Origin: Schizochytrium sp. TIO01
Taxonomy: Eukaryota; Protista; Bigyra: Labyrinthulomycetes
NCBI GenBank assembly: GCA_004764695.1
Contig: SMSO01000035.1
Coordinates: 3,422,040 to 3,486,039 of the forward strand
Reading direction: 5' to 3'
Length of the DNA stretch: 64,000 nt
The notes below the pieces were generated by a model. That model saw only the letters and a program-made list of their open reading frames with translations, searched no databases and was not told where the DNA came from. Made by a program: the position numbers and the translations under genes. Below, piece by piece: positions 27,337 through 32,466 of this stretch; position 1 is the stretch's first letter; each line of letters opens with the position of its first letter.

Positions 27337-28845
27337 TACTGCGTAGCAAGGCTACAATTTGTATTATGCAGTGAGATGGACGATAATCTTTCTTTTCTCG
27401 AGTTTAGCTCGACAAAATGCAAGTTTGGAGCTTAAGGAAGCGCTAAGCGCACTCGCTTGAGCGCAGCAAGTTCGGTATTTCCTGTGGAGCCGGCAAGCCA
27501 AACCTGGCAGATCTTGGATCCAGGTGGCTGGCTAGAAGAGCGCCTTATTTGGTGCACACCAAATTTTTTCGCAGCCTTCAGGAGCGCCTACCCAACCTTC
27601 AATGGGTCCTCTCGTCCACACACACTTCCCGGCACAGCCCTTTCGCTGCCCGTGAACTCTAGGTTTTGATCATCGCTTGCTTGCTACAAGCGTTCTTCAT
27701 CTCCTACGGTGCTTAGAACACCTGGAACTCACTAGAACATCTAGAACTTATGAATCATGTACCACATCTAGAACACCTGGACCTCCTCCGCGCTGGGCTC
27801 TCACCCTACTATTTACACTAACCATTCTGCTAGTTCCGCCGGTTCCGTGGCTCGGGCAGGTTCCTGCAGAACAAATTAAGAACGATCCAGGAACTCAGGG
27901 AACGTTCCGAATGTGCGGGAGAATCGAAGGTGCCTGAGTAAGTAAGGAAAGGAAAGGCCTCATTTCGAGACGACCACTCGCGACTAATTCGATCCGGTGA
28001 ATGCACGGAGGCCGAAGAGAGACGGGGGGATAGAGAGTGAGGTGCGGAAGAAGGGAGGCGTCCCATGGCTTTGTGCACATCGGTTGGGACCTGGAGATCC
28101 ATTTGCAAGAGCAGAGAACCTCGCTCACGCTTTGGTCGGCTTCTGACGGGCGCATTCTTGAAGCGCCGAGGCTCGCTCGTGTCACTCTCTCTCCTGCTTA
28201 TAACGCAAAAACCGTTCTTTTGGTTGCAGTATTAACCTGTGAAGCCGCTGGCTCATATGGAACAACACGTACTAATTATAGTGTGTAGACAAGAACTGTA
28301 ATGGAATTTGAGATTGTTATACGGCGAGAGTAAGCAGCGCAGAAACGATCGGCGCGGGGTCCTATACATCGCTTAGGTAGTCCTATGGAGCGAGAGGGCA
28401 ATGGGAAAATAAGGAAATAAATAAATTCTGGAGAAAAAGAGAGAGAGAGAGAGAGAGTCAAAATTTAGTGAACGGATGAGGAAACGAACGATGAACGATC
28501 GTTGAAGGGAGCAAGGAAATGAAGGCCGGCGCTGGAAATACGGGGGGTCGAAGCTTGCAGAGCGCTGTATAGTTGATCCGCAGTAGGATCTCCAAAGACT
28601 GCTTCAATGATGCGATGATGATGATGATGGGAGATCGATAAAATGCGTGTTTTAGAAGGCAATGACCTTTTTTTTATTTTTTTTTTAAAAATAATAATTG
28701 AAATTAAGTCATTTCGGAGGAAGTGAATGCAATGTTATTCATGGCATTCAATACGAATTGAAAAGGGAAAACAGTGTTTCTAAATCAAACACATCTCGTT
28801 CACTTATCTTCTTGAGACTCGAAGTTATTCAAGTCACTATAAACT

Positions 28846-29013
28846 TGCAAAGTTATAAAGTTAATGCAAAGTTATAAAGTTATTGCAAAGTTTTAAGTTA
28901 TTGCAAAGTTATAAAGTTAATGCAAAGTTATAAAGTTATTGCAAAGTTTTAAGTTATTGCAAAGTCATAAAGTTATTGCAAAGTTATAAAGTTATTGCAA
29001 AGTTATTGTAAAG
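28846..29013. repeat. 18-19-bp minisatellite (tgcaaagttataaagttat), ~9 units
   Basis: Directly visible; the first six units form a duplicated 56-bp trimer. Confidence 0.93.
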
Positions 29014-29478
29014 ACGGCGGAAAAGGAGAATGATGGAGCAGAAGAGAACAAAACCCGAAACGAGCACGGAAGACGCCTTCTGCGACGCTGAGGCCTGCGG
29101 AGATTGGGGCAGACGGCCTCCGGGGCAGCGCCAGGTAGGCCGGGGAGTCGAGCACGGAGCCCTCTCCCGTCGTCGCGAGGGCGCGACGGCTGGCTCGGAC
29201 GGACCAGCTACCTGACTGACTGTCCGCAAAGGCTTGCTTGAAGGCTTGCTTGAGCTTGCAAAGAAAGCCTCGTTCACTCAGTACTTGAGGCAGATTTGAC
29301 GAACTCGGGCTTGCAGATTCGGCTTACGCTGGGGGGGACTCTGGCACAGCTGGGTGGAGTAAAAGTGCCTCGGGGTAGGCACATACACGTATTTTGCGGA
29401 GAGGGGCAATAGAGAGTACTTTATTGCAAGGAGAATTGTGCCGTGGTTTGTGCAAAGAGGTAGCCAAAATTAATTTGC

Positions 29479-32466
29479 TTGCTGGAGCTATCGCAGGTTT
29501 GTGGAACTGAGCGTGCTAGGGAAGCTTGCTTGAAGCTCCTGGGGAACATGAGCGAGGAGGCCCTTCGTCGGGCAGCGGCCCTGGTGGAAACTATGCGTGT
29601 AGACGATTCTGAGAAGGATGTTGTGGACCACACTTCTGGAGTTGAGGGACCAGAAATGGCTGAACGGATCGAAGAAGATACCAGAAACAGCGATGCGGAT
29701 GCCACGGAATACAATCATGACGGTGATGCCCTGAGCAGTACAAGGAAAATTACTAATGTAGCAGCAGATGTATATAAAGCGGAAACGCTAGACTCCTCAA
29801 GCGAGTCGCGTTCCAGCGACCTGGGCACGCAGCAATTATTTGCCTATCTTTATGCATCACCTTTAACGCAGCACGGTCAAGATGGCAACAGTAAAGAAAC
29901 AGAGGAAGAGGTAGAGGCCCTAAATGTGACAAAAGAGGCCGAAGATCTGTTGAACATGTTTGATGAGGAAGGTAAGGAGCTCAGGTTTCGTGTCGAGGTG
30001 GCAACTAGAGAGTCTTTGAGGCGAACTTTGCAATCTGAGAGTGCAAACTGCTCGGCAGATGTCATTCATTTTACCTGCCACGGACGTCAAGATTTTTTAG
30101 CTCTTGAAGATGGCGCTGGTCAACTCGACGAACTCAACGCTGATGACCTTAAGAATATGCTGAATCGGGATCGCATGCCGGATGTCGTCTTTGTGAGTGC
30201 ATGCTTCTCAGAGTTTATTGGGCACATTTTCGCTGAAGCTGGTGTAAAGCATGTTGTAGCTGTAGTTCGTGAGGTTGCAGACAAGGTCGGGAAGGATTTT
30301 GCTGAGAGGTTCTACAGAGAGCTTATCAACGGCCAAACTGTAAAGTGGGCTTTCGAGGCTGCCTGGATGGACATTGCTATGACCCCAAACCGTGACGCGG
30401 CCTGGGTAGAGCGTCAGCGAGGAAAATTTAAGCTTCTGCCTGAATTTGGTATGGACCATGATGTGCCAGTCTTTGATTCCGAGCGGTTTGGCCGGGTTCG
30501 CGTAGAAACCCCTTTAAAGGCTATTAAATTCTACCCTCGCAATATTGGCAGCTCAATCATCGGCCGGGGAATTGTGGTACAACGTATTGTGCAGGCAATC
30601 GCCCCTCGTGAACTCTGTAAAGCTAATCAAAACCGTCCTCGTTGGATCACAGTTTGCGGTACTGAGGGAATAGGCAAATCTGTGTGTACAATCCTTGCTT
30701 GTAACTATGTCAGTCAGCGGAGGCACTGTAAGGCTATTTATTATATCCATCTTGCTGATCCCAACAATGCGGGGGTATCGCATGGAATCCAAGGCGCTCG
30801 TGCTGCACTTCTTAAAGCTTTTCGTTCTAATTCCATGAATCGAAGTGACCTTAGCACAGCATCATCTGAGGCGGATTTATTCAAGGGACTGAATGAACTC
30901 ACCAAAGACTATGCAGCTTACCCTGGCGACTTGATTGTTGTTCTAGACGGCTGCACGCAATGGGCACGTTGGTCTTCTGTTGCACAACCTGCTTTGGAGT
31001 CTTTCATAAAAGACTTACTCGCAGCTTGTCCTGAGGTTACGGTTTTATGTACAAGTGGTACTGCCATTTCCCCCTCTTGTGCTAGTGTTTGGAGCACTGA
31101 AGCACATGATGAATATGGCTTACCAAGAGAACATACATTAGAGGTCTTGGGGCTGTCGACACGTTACGCAGCACAGCTTCTTCTGCAGAGAACTCAGCGT
31201 CAAATTAAGGGAATCGAACTAGGCGATAGTTTATTTGATAAAAAGACGCTTAAACAAAAGTGCGAAGAGGTACTAGCACATCACCCTGTCATTCACCAGT
31301 GCCGCGGCCACCCATTAGTGATTGGAGCTGTCGCCGAAAAATTGAATCGCTGTAGGTTCAATGACAGTGATGTCGAGGAAACAGCGCGAAGCACCGCGAG
31401 ACGATTTTTCTCCTCTGCTGAGACATCATCTGGTTCAATTGCTAGAACGCATAATATCAATGATCGTTATGGGTCAAATTCAACTCATATGCAAGAGTCA
31501 CTTCATGTTAAGCCTGGTCCTGCTGCACCTGGTCGTCGCGTGCCTCCAGATATTGACCAGAGCCAACAACCACAGCATCATAATCACCAGCACATTCCTT
31601 CCCATCATATTGATCAGCAGAATCAACACCCACACGCACCTTCATCGAACGGGCTCGGGGTGCATGCAAATAATGTAAATCCTCCTTCTAACTTTAGTTC
31701 ATTCTCCAGGTCTCGCGGCAGTGGTCAACAACTCCATGCCAATGGAAGCAATGGTATGCTCGATATGAAGAAGAGGCATGATTCGAGAACAACCATCCCG
31801 TCTTCATATTCTGGCTCTTGTTCGTCAGGTCTTATTGAAGATGATTGGGTGCCGGGGTTCGTTGATGCTGCTTGCACTGAAATCGAAGCTCTTCCAGATG
31901 GGCGAGCCATGGATATGCAATGGGATGCAGTTCTGCAAAGCACCAGATCAGCACTTCACGATATTTTTGATAAGAACCCACAAATGCGGCGCTCTCTTTC
32001 TCAAGACGATTTGTACCGCATGCGTTCGGTCTATGACCGATGCTATAGTACACAAGGCCATATCTCAACTAGAAGAGTTGTCGAGTCCTTCGCAAAATGG
32101 CTTTGTTCTACAGTGAAAACATTACTTGAGAATGCTGAATACTGGAATCACAATATCATTTACGGACTTGTTGCCAAGGAAAAAGTCAACGAGATGCTGC
32201 TTTCCAAGAGCCCGGGAACTTTCATGATTCGTGTCAGTGAATCTGTTCCTGGTAGTCTTGCTGTTGCATATCATATCCACCCTCATGGCTCACCACCTCG
32301 TGTCGTCCACTCTTTAGTTGCAATGGAAAATGGTGGGAAGGTATCACTGGAATTTCGCAATGGACGTAAACACTTCGATTCTCTTCGAGGCTTCTTGATG
32401 GCTCATGCGATTTTTGCAAAGCTCTATCCTGAACAGGATAAACAAACTGTCTTACAAGCCTTGTGA
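29479..32466 (+). CDS. CHAT (caspase-like) protease + STAND/NB-ARC-like NTPase + STAT-like linker-SH2 protein
   Basis: CHAT: VIHFTCHG and VFVSACFS. NTPase: GTEGIGKS, IVVLDG, CRGHPLVI. SH2: IYGLVAKEKVNEMLLSKSPGTFMIRVSESVPGSLAVAY. The start is uncertain: ATG 29548, or a first exon at 29030-29134. Confidence 0.85.
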   Translation: MLELSQVCGTERAREACLKLLGNMSEEALRRAAALVETMRVDDSEKDVVDHTSGVEGPEMAERIEEDTRNSDADATEYNHDGDALSSTRKITNVAADVYKAETLDSSSESRSSDLGTQQLFAYLYASPLTQHGQDGNSKETEEEVEALNVTKEAEDLLNMFDEEGKELRFRVEVATRESLRRTLQSESANCSADVIHFTCHGRQDFLALEDGAGQLDELNADDLKNMLNRDRMPDVVFVSACFSEFIGHIFAEAGVKHVVAVVREVADKVGKDFAERFYRELINGQTVKWAFEAAWMDIAMTPNRDAAWVERQRGKFKLLPEFGMDHDVPVFDSERFGRVRVETPLKAIKFYPRNIGSSIIGRGIVVQRIVQAIAPRELCKANQNRPRWITVCGTEGIGKSVCTILACNYVSQRRHCKAIYYIHLADPNNAGVSHGIQGARAALLKAFRSNSMNRSDLSTASSEADLFKGLNELTKDYAAYPGDLIVVLDGCTQWARWSSVAQPALESFIKDLLAACPEVTVLCTSGTAISPSCASVWSTEAHDEYGLPREHTLEVLGLSTRYAAQLLLQRTQRQIKGIELGDSLFDKKTLKQKCEEVLAHHPVIHQCRGHPLVIGAVAEKLNRCRFNDSDVEETARSTARRFFSSAETSSGSIARTHNINDRYGSNSTHMQESLHVKPGPAAPGRRVPPDIDQSQQPQHHNHQHIPSHHIDQQNQHPHAPSSNGLGVHANNVNPPSNFSSFSRSRGSGQQLHANGSNGMLDMKKRHDSRTTIPSSYSGSCSSGLIEDDWVPGFVDAACTEIEALPDGRAMDMQWDAVLQSTRSALHDIFDKNPQMRRSLSQDDLYRMRSVYDRCYSTQGHISTRRVVESFAKWLCSTVKTLLENAEYWNHNIIYGLVAKEKVNEMLLSKSPGTFMIRVSESVPGSLAVAYHIHPHGSPPRVVHSLVAMENGGKVSLEFRNGRKHFDSLRGFLMAHAIFAKLYPEQDKQTVLQAL

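Follow-up and report, generated by a model that had tools for sequence, protein, structure and literature searches.

What could hold a caspase-like protease in check, or release it, when the same polypeptide also carries an NLR-type nucleotide switch and, at its far end, the phosphate-reading module of a STAT? This question is raised by a gene of the marine thraustochytrid Schizochytrium sp. TIO01, a labyrinthulomycete stramenopile (GenBank assembly GCA_004764695.1), which lies on the plus strand at positions 29548..32466 of a 64,000-nucleotide stretch of contig SMSO01000035.1 (positions 3,422,040 to 3,486,039 of the forward strand, hereafter the window). Its coding sequence is complete, consists of a single exon and specifies 972 amino acids plus a stop codon, arranged as a CHAT protease domain, a STAND NTPase, a disordered spacer and a STAT-type linker-SH2 module. 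Decisions on cell death and immunity depend centrally on NLR/STAND switches and caspase-like proteases, in animals and plants as well as in fungi and bacteria, and the SH2 domain is the classic reader of tyrosine kinase signals; very little is known, in turn, about immunity, programmed death and phosphotyrosine signalling in protists. With a probability that we put at roughly 0.55, the protein is a caspase-like protease that is controlled by a signal and laid out like STAND/NLR proteins, with effector, switch and sensor in a row; phosphotyrosine would trigger it through its SH2 domain, and proximity would activate it. Phosphotyrosine binding, oligomerisation, activation by proximity, the substrates and the biological role are what we infer. 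If the SH2 domain does gate or target the protease, the protein would connect phospho-signalling in protists directly to a protease of the NLR type.

That the parts belong to one gene is seen from a complete transcript. An open reading frame (ORF) from the MMETSP transcriptomes (P0001, 'type:complete') starts at the same methionine, likewise comprises 972 residues and differs from the genomic version at 6 of the 972 (99% identity). The gene is real and transcribed in MMETSP cultures, and since the matching transcript is complete, the CHAT, NTPase and SH2 parts lie on one mRNA without an intron. A preliminary description of this locus, made from the sequence alone, had proposed the protease-NTPase-SH2 architecture and had named separate transcripts for its parts as a finding that would refute it; P0001 instead places the parts on a single one. 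The same description took the gene to be the ORF 29479-32466. This ORF exists, in that the open frame continues upstream of the first ATG and has a TTG at 29479, but translation is likely to start at that first ATG (29548), as it does in the transcript. Every motif quoted at the time is found in the one open frame, namely HFTCHG, SACFS, GTEGIGKS, VVLDG and GHPL, followed by RSLSQDDL, SFAKWL, YWNHNIIYGLVAKE, PGTFMIRVSES and LYPEQDK, the last five of which all fall within the final 190 residues. An artefact, be it an open frame that arose by chance, a pseudogene or separate genes mis-joined during assembly, was also considered and ruled out by the complete transcript and the conserved relatives: the transcribed ORF has the same length of 972 residues, Hondaea possesses an orthologue, and dozens of relatives have a matching domain order and have kept the catalytic residues, so that the probability of such an artefact is negligible.

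Does the protease look capable of cleavage? The CHAT domain spans approximately residues 96-330 (29833..30537, plus strand, as are all features of the gene) and is recognised by the Pfam profile PF12770 over residues 126-283, with an E-value of 6.7e-16 and 59 bits (cut-off 24). The profile is matched by all 37 relatives in the alignment to which the conservation values given here refer. Its caspase-like catalytic dyad is intact, with His178 in HFTCHG (nucleotides 30067-30084) and Cys219 in SACFS (nucleotides 30196-30210), and H174, H178, G179, A218, C219 and S221 are each at least 90% conserved; the nearest solved chain to this region is 8tl0, annotated as 'CHAT domain-containing protein' (E 7e-4). 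The dyad positions are informative because a paralogue in the same genome has lost both. This protein of 930 residues (L018:2127-4916:+, G000:C24:5253127-5255916) has the CHAT-STAND-STAT-SH2 layout and retains the Walker A motif (GSPGTGKS) and the SH2 arginine (FMLRLSET), with the catalytic His changed to Ser (HFIGSG), the Cys changed to Gln (SAQ), and long poly-Q and poly-H runs in its tail. It is likely to be a pseudo-protease that could regulate the active protein, whereas the CHAT protease of the gene studied here is, as far as its residues tell, active-looking. CHAT proteases that wait for a signal are known from prokaryotes: in the type III-E Craspase (TPR-CHAT/Csx29) and in SAVED-CHAT, the protease is inactive until the sensor binds its ligand, and specific cleavage follows. 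In those systems, unlike here, the sensor is a CRISPR effector complex or the cyclic-oligonucleotide-binding SAVED domain, and neither a STAND NTPase nor an SH2 domain is present.

The protease is followed by the putative switch, a NACHT/NB-ARC-like STAND NTPase made up of the nucleotide-binding domain (NBD) and helical domain 1 (HD1), at approximately residues 335-627 (30550..31428). Its assignment draws on motifs, family profiles and a structural model. The motifs comprise Walker A (GTEGIGKS, nucleotides 30658-30681), Walker B (VVLDG, nucleotides 30937-30951) and GxP (GHPL, nucleotides 31306-31317), to which an upstream GR motif is added (IIGR, with R340 at least 90% conserved), reportedly a hallmark of the STAND class; G376 is invariant among the relatives, and K377, D467, G587 and P589 are each at least 90% conserved. 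Single-sequence Pfam matches of this NTPase are all below threshold (NPHP3_N with 7e-4 and 20.2 bits against a cut-off of 24.8, AAA_16 with 3e-3, and NB-ARC with 1.3e-2 and 15.2 bits against a cut-off of 23.5), and it is at the level of the family that the profiles match, with NACHT recognised in 27 of the 37 relatives (best 1.5e-12), NB-ARC in 20 (best 3.4e-12) and nSTAND3 in 14. In an AlphaFold2 (AF2) model with a predicted local distance difference test score (pLDDT) of 82.9, the NTPase has NRC3, Apaf-1, NRC4 and CED-4 as its leading Foldseek matches, and the modelled helices line up with HD1 in NRC4, in CED-4 and in Apaf-1 (in the last as far as chain residue 365). A single-sequence search of the PDB returned a marginal match to Apaf-1 (E 0.11), and VIA-align does not separate the NLR type from Cdc6/ORC- or TnsC-type ATPases for this module. 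Apaf-1/CED-4 apoptosomes and NRC/ZAR1 resistosomes resemble the protein in the layout of effector, nucleotide-binding oligomerisation domain (NOD) and sensor, with the P-loop and the GxP helix aligning, and the apoptosomes also in the induced-proximity logic that is proposed here for activating a caspase-type protease. They differ in that the protease is here part of the same polypeptide rather than recruited through CARDs, and in that the sensor is one small domain on a disordered tether.

The tether is a low-complexity spacer of 158 residues (approximately residues 628-785, 31429..31902), which is rich in S, G, H, P, N and Q, predicted to be disordered, with a pLDDT below 50 at its start, and contains two tyrosines, Y641 and Y754; across the family, its length ranges from 11 to 299 residues. 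The putative sensor begins with a helical linker domain of the STAT type (approximately residues 786-866, 31903..32145), marked by a near-invariant R815 in RRSLSQDDL, and is completed by a STAT-type SH2 domain (approximately residues 867-972, 32146..32463), which is supported by Pfam, by PDB matches and by Foldseek. The Pfam SH2 profile scores 23.3 bits (cut-off 21, E 7.2e-5) and also matches 36 of the 37 relatives, and a PDB sequence search with the C-terminus finds Dictyostelium STATa first (3.1e-9), followed by STAT5, STAT6, STAT3 and STAT1. In the AF2 model, the final 198 residues reach a pLDDT of 93.4; the linker helices (residues 14-35, 45-61 and 67-87 of the model) co-align with the linker domain of STAT6, STAT5a and STATa, and Foldseek aligns the linker-SH2 model with these three over about 198 columns (TMq 0.63-0.68), compared with about 88 columns for SH2 domains of the Src type. 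The Pfam family STAT_linker itself is matched by two of the 37 aligned relatives and by P0211 outside that alignment, and in the ESM Atlas the linker-SH2 part adjoins clusters of SH2 and STAT-linker domains. Within the SH2 domain, the phosphate-binding Arg895 (position beta-B5, nucleotides 32230-32232) lies in GTFMIRVSES and aligns with the arginine of FLIRFSE in STATa, and K877 occupies the alpha-A position; G873, L884, G890, F892, R895 and S897 as well as R815 of the linker are at least 90% conserved, and the motifs GTF..R.SES and LYP..K are conserved family-wide.

Is the protein then a STAT? The likeness to STATs, the closest being Dictyostelium STATa (PDB 1uur/1uus; sequence match 3e-9, about 198 aligned columns, TMq 0.67-0.68), consists of the contiguous helical linker and SH2 domain with the motifs W..IxGF, GTFLLRFSES and LYP..K. 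In contrast to STATs, the protein has no coiled-coil, no DNA-binding domain, no tail tyrosine and no transactivation segment: the region upstream is taken up by protease, NTPase and disorder, and the chain ends 14 residues past the LYP motif without a tail tyrosine segment, close to the family median of 9 residues after the SH2 domain. A true STAT was ruled out for lack of a DNA-binding domain and of a tail. A search of the genome (64 Mb in 37 contigs, also the basis of the other genome searches reported here) gave no match to the STAT DNA-binding domain PF02864 (STAT_bind), but the control genomes were equally silent. The name 'STAT A' under which the Hondaea orthologue is deposited is misleading. 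Module by module, the preliminary description has thus been borne out, as regards the CHAT domain with an intact dyad, the STAND-type NTPase with Walker A, the Walker B aspartate and GxP, the disordered Q/H/S linker, the STAT-type linker and SH2 domain with the phosphate-binding arginine, and the absence of a DNA-binding domain and of a tail after the SH2 domain.

The architecture as a whole was put forward as one of which no description was known. It is real, and a body of about 8.4 million full-text papers yielded none combining 'CHAT domain' with 'SH2 domain', nor one combining STAND, CHAT, SH2 and NACHT, a mention in the SH2 survey of Liu et al. 2011 not being excluded; singular, however, it is not. 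As an NLR-like protease, the protein is of a known kind, and it is the combination of CHAT, NTPase and SH2 for which no description was found. An exhaustive HMMER search returned 2083 proteins at E <=1e-3. When profiles from the three parts were run on the best 150 cluster representatives, CHAT, NTPase and SH2 were found together in 43 of them, in an order that never varied, and CHAT and SH2 occur together in 66 of the 265 proteins fetched, so that the layout is common to at least 66 public proteins, which come from several protist lineages. Their sources include the thraustochytrids Mucochytrium quahogii and Hondaea, Saprolegnia diclina (XP_008612470, 'SH2 domain-containing protein'), the brown algae Ectocarpus and Scytosiphon, the Rhizaria, represented by the chlorarachniophytes Norrisiella and Partenskyella and by Mataza (Cercozoa), and Mantamonas plastica from the CRuMs. 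Public names are descriptive in three cases ('STAT A', 'SH2 domain-containing protein' and the misnomer 'DNA polymerase III delta prime subunit'); the other proteins are called 'hypothetical' or 'unnamed', if they are named at all.

Where does the SH2 domain sit with respect to relatives that lack it? In a maximum-likelihood tree of 129 CHAT plus NTPase cores (unrooted, obtained by a quick search), a branch with an SH-aLRT support of 99% has all 41 SH2-bearing rows to one side. That side also holds 20 rows without a detected SH2 domain, 14 of which stop at most 91 residues after the NTPase and may be fragments for that reason. Being unrooted and quickly searched, the tree is no proof of a single origin of the SH2 fusion, with which it is compatible. 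The opposite side includes CHAT-NACHT-TPR proteins, whose close relatives are bacterial proteins from metagenome-assembled genomes of Desulfobacterales, Anaerolineae, Chloroflexi and Cloacimonetes. The core is homologous between these and the protein studied here (the bacterial-type P0035 is 37% identical over residues 121-407), and the SH2 domain stands at the position of the TPR in the closest bacterial relatives, which fits the idea of a swapped sensor. Other partners of the core are SAM plus TPR in Aphanomyces and Pythium insidiosum, and LRR in diatoms; judging by such domain orders, the SH2 domain occupies the slot in which sensor or adaptor modules are exchanged in the CHAT-NACHT class. 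A protein search with the family alignment returned mostly bacterial STAND/TPR proteins, with the 8000 top word-sharing candidates scored, and is uninformative on taxonomy.

Characterised proteins of comparable build come from bacteria and fungi. Protease-NOD-repeat proteins resembling NLRs have been described in both, and a fungal TPR-CHAT protease cleaves and thereby activates a neighbouring gasdermin (PMC8851545). These CHAT-NACHT/NB-ARC-TPR proteins, among them the HET-Q2-like gasdermin-cleaving proteases (PMC8851545), share three things with the Schizochytrium protein, namely a CHAT domain with its dyad at the N-terminus, a STAND NTPase after it and, at the C-terminus, a module that binds, or here would bind, a ligand. 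They differ from it in the nature of that last module, since a STAT-type linker-SH2 here replaces TPR, WD40 or ANK repeats, and in that no winged helix and no clustered gasdermin or substrate gene is found here; because the host is a eukaryotic protist, the gene neighbourhood gives no clue in this regard. The oomycete relatives P0244 (Pythium oligandrum), P0257 (Phytophthora megakarya) and P0232 (Albugo laibachii), all uncharacterised, also join the core to a reader of phospho-amino acids. Unlike the SH2 domain, theirs is an FHA domain, a reader of phosphothreonine, and it lies N-terminal to the protease instead of C-terminal to the NTPase; on the same predicted core, it constitutes a second, independent link to phospho-signalling. 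A wide generalisation suggests itself, in which the CHAT-NACHT proteins with a phospho-reader, whether the C-terminal SH2 domain of labyrinthulomycetes, Saprolegnia, brown algae, Rhizaria and Mantamonas or the N-terminal FHA domain of other oomycetes, would be an old class of NLR-like death or immune proteases of protists, which kinase signals would set off instead of a ligand bound directly to repeats. The STAT-type linker-SH2 unit would have been put to use as a sensor in these machines independently of STATs and possibly before them, and the core would be shared with bacteria by horizontal transfer. We regard this as speculative and rather improbable in its entirety. The family is relevant to two questions of evolution, namely how the STAT-type SH2 domain originated outside transcription factors and how bacteria and eukaryotes exchanged CHAT-NACHT modules.

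How would the parts work together? On the reading that we favour, a kinase of the tyrosine kinase or tyrosine kinase-like (TKL) type would phosphorylate a tyrosine motif on a receptor, a scaffold or a guarded target, and the SH2 domain would dock on this motif, whereby the protein would be recruited or freed from an inactive state. The NTPase modules, once nucleotide-bound, would self-associate, and the CHAT domains brought together in this way would gain activity through their closeness and cut substrates in trans. In the end the cell would be committed, for instance to regulated death, to defence or to a developmental switch. Thraustochytrids are cultivable and genetically tractable, which makes the hypothesis testable at the bench.

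Several observations weigh against this reading. No winged-helix domain was found after HD1, either in the model or in the structural alignments, which end at NBD plus HD1; beyond approximately residue 627, the sequence is of low complexity with a pLDDT below 50, and several relatives cannot house a winged helix because their spacer between NTPase and SH2 measures merely 11-50 residues. Helical domain 2 (HD2), present in apoptosomes and resistosomes, is missing as well. The Walker B motif reads VVLDGCTQ, in which D467 is kept and the second acid is missing, compared with DGxD/E in most relatives, and the sensor-1 region (CTSGT) has no arginine. In consequence, hydrolysis of nucleoside triphosphate (NTP) may be weak or absent; the missing acid suggests reduced hydrolysis in the copy of this lineage, and the NTPase may bind nucleotide yet hydrolyse it poorly. 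The likeness to NLRs and apoptosomes claimed in the preliminary description therefore extends to the layout of effector, switch and sensor and to the fold, and stops at the winged helix, the second Walker B acid and the sensor-1 arginine, without which the apoptosome analogy is incomplete. Furthermore, specificity for phosphotyrosine is not guaranteed, since there are SH2 domains, that of Spt6 for one, which read phosphoserine or phosphothreonine. Finally, no substrate candidate was found, and among the genes flanking the locus no mobile, viral or defence-island context was seen, the neighbours being housekeeping genes only. The genome search for gasdermin (PF04598) gave no match, but the control genomes were equally silent.

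The missing winged helix, which would relay the signal of a sensor, brings up the question of whether the SH2 domain is a trigger at all. It might be an output, adaptor or localisation module that holds the protease at phosphorylated substrates or scaffolds, as SH2 domains do for many enzymes, while activation would come from the nucleotide state, the unconserved N-terminus or a partner such as the dead paralogue. We consider this rather improbable. The flexible tether of such variable length is what one would sooner expect of a targeting module than of a sensor in tight contact with the NOD, and the phospho-reader of the oomycete relatives is placed at the opposite end of the core; yet the SH2 domain is found exactly at the TPR sensor position of the nearest bacterial relatives, the fusion is ancient and its order fixed, and the roles of trigger and targeting module are not mutually exclusive. 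A docking prediction between CHAT-NTPase (residues 95-640) and linker-SH2 (residues 775-972) scored 0.00 without controls and gives no verdict either way.

What the SH2 domain would read is a related matter. It could bind phosphoserine, phosphothreonine or an unphosphorylated ligand, or engage in homotypic contacts, in which case the protein would not be wired to tyrosine kinases. The Spt6 precedent apart, this would agree with the lack of demonstrated dedicated tyrosine kinases in the lineage and with the missing conserved tail tyrosine, on which reciprocal dimerisation in the manner of STATs would depend. At least 140 loci of the genome match the Tyr/Ser-Thr kinase profile PF07714, which does not tell true tyrosine kinases from TKLs, also matches Ser/Thr kinases and finds matches in the bacterial control genomes too. 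Set against this are the residues of the phosphotyrosine pocket typical of STATs (Lys/Arg at alpha-A, Arg895 at beta-B5 and SES), which are at least 90% conserved, the two classical protein tyrosine phosphatase genes of the genome, and the precedent of the Dictyostelium STATs, which are phosphorylated on tyrosine by TKL kinases. A reader of anything other than phosphotyrosine is, on this evidence, unlikely.

Even if the machine works as proposed under the favoured reading, immunity or death need not be its purpose, and how many such genes the organism has bears on this point. A search of the genome with the family profile found four relatives, the studied gene included. Apart from the inactive paralogue, these are a protein of 1606 residues (L015:4319-9136:-, G000:C33), in which teneurin-like EGF motifs at approximately residue 820 precede a CHAT domain with its dyad (residues 1027-1213) and a STAND-like NTPase (Walker A, LIVLDD, GNPRE) without an SH2 domain, and which resembles a receptor built on this core; and a frame of about 5063 residues (L021:6264-9998:- plus L022:2-10000:-, G000:C32, approximately 1996263-2011450), with a SPRY domain and a CHAT-NTPase at the extreme C-terminus, which the family profile recognises with E 2.9e-104 and whose remainder has no Pfam match. 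There is thus one CHAT-STAND-SH2 gene with an active-looking protease and one inactive paralogue, without an expansion of the kind seen in immune receptors. This is in line with a role in ordinary signalling or development (zoospore or vegetative cycle, nutrients), as are the housekeeping genomic context, the presence of the transcript in ordinary MMETSP cultures and the existence of non-death proteases among the CHAT relatives, such as separase and HetF. On the other hand, bacterial gasdermin-associated and CRISPR-associated CHAT proteases act in death or defence, the core is joined across protists to many sensor-like domains (TPR, LRR, SAM, FHA, SPRY and an EGF ectodomain), which is a hallmark of conflict systems, and the characterised CHAT-NOD-repeat relatives work in cell death or defence (PMC8851545). 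An ordinary signalling role is a possibility that we do not think probable.

Another gene touches on phospho-signalling in the same genome. It encodes a protein of 645 residues (L002:910-2847:-, G000:C31) whose two tandem SH2 domains (Pfam 1.6e-18) come after a helical stretch with a match to the STAT-type linker of the family; no recognisable catalytic or DNA-binding domain was found in it.

At the start of the protein, the 95 residues in front of the CHAT domain (29548..29832) are acidic and rich in S, E, D and A. They are matched by P0001 alone, hence not conserved beyond the species, and are possibly a pro-region or a tail. The Hondaea fermentalgiana orthologue (P0002, 634 residues) is shorter, its gene model passing from just behind Walker B into the linker-SH2; it lacks the spacer as well as the latter half of the NTPase, probably because of a wrongly predicted intron. 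At nucleotides 30937-30960, the Schizochytrium protein reads VVLDGCTQ and the Hondaea orthologue LLDGCEQ. The genes on either side of the locus are both on the minus strand, with a UXS-type NAD-dependent epimerase/dehydratase to the left and Ctf4/WDHD1 to the right. No long ORF is present between 27.4 and 29.4 kb of the window, and positions 28001-30000, which take in the upstream intergenic region and the first approximately 450 bases of the gene, are strongly skewed, with a GC skew of 0.23 and an AT skew of 0.12 (G over C and A over T). This skewed tract could be a promoter, a 5' untranslated region or a purine-rich tract of low complexity.

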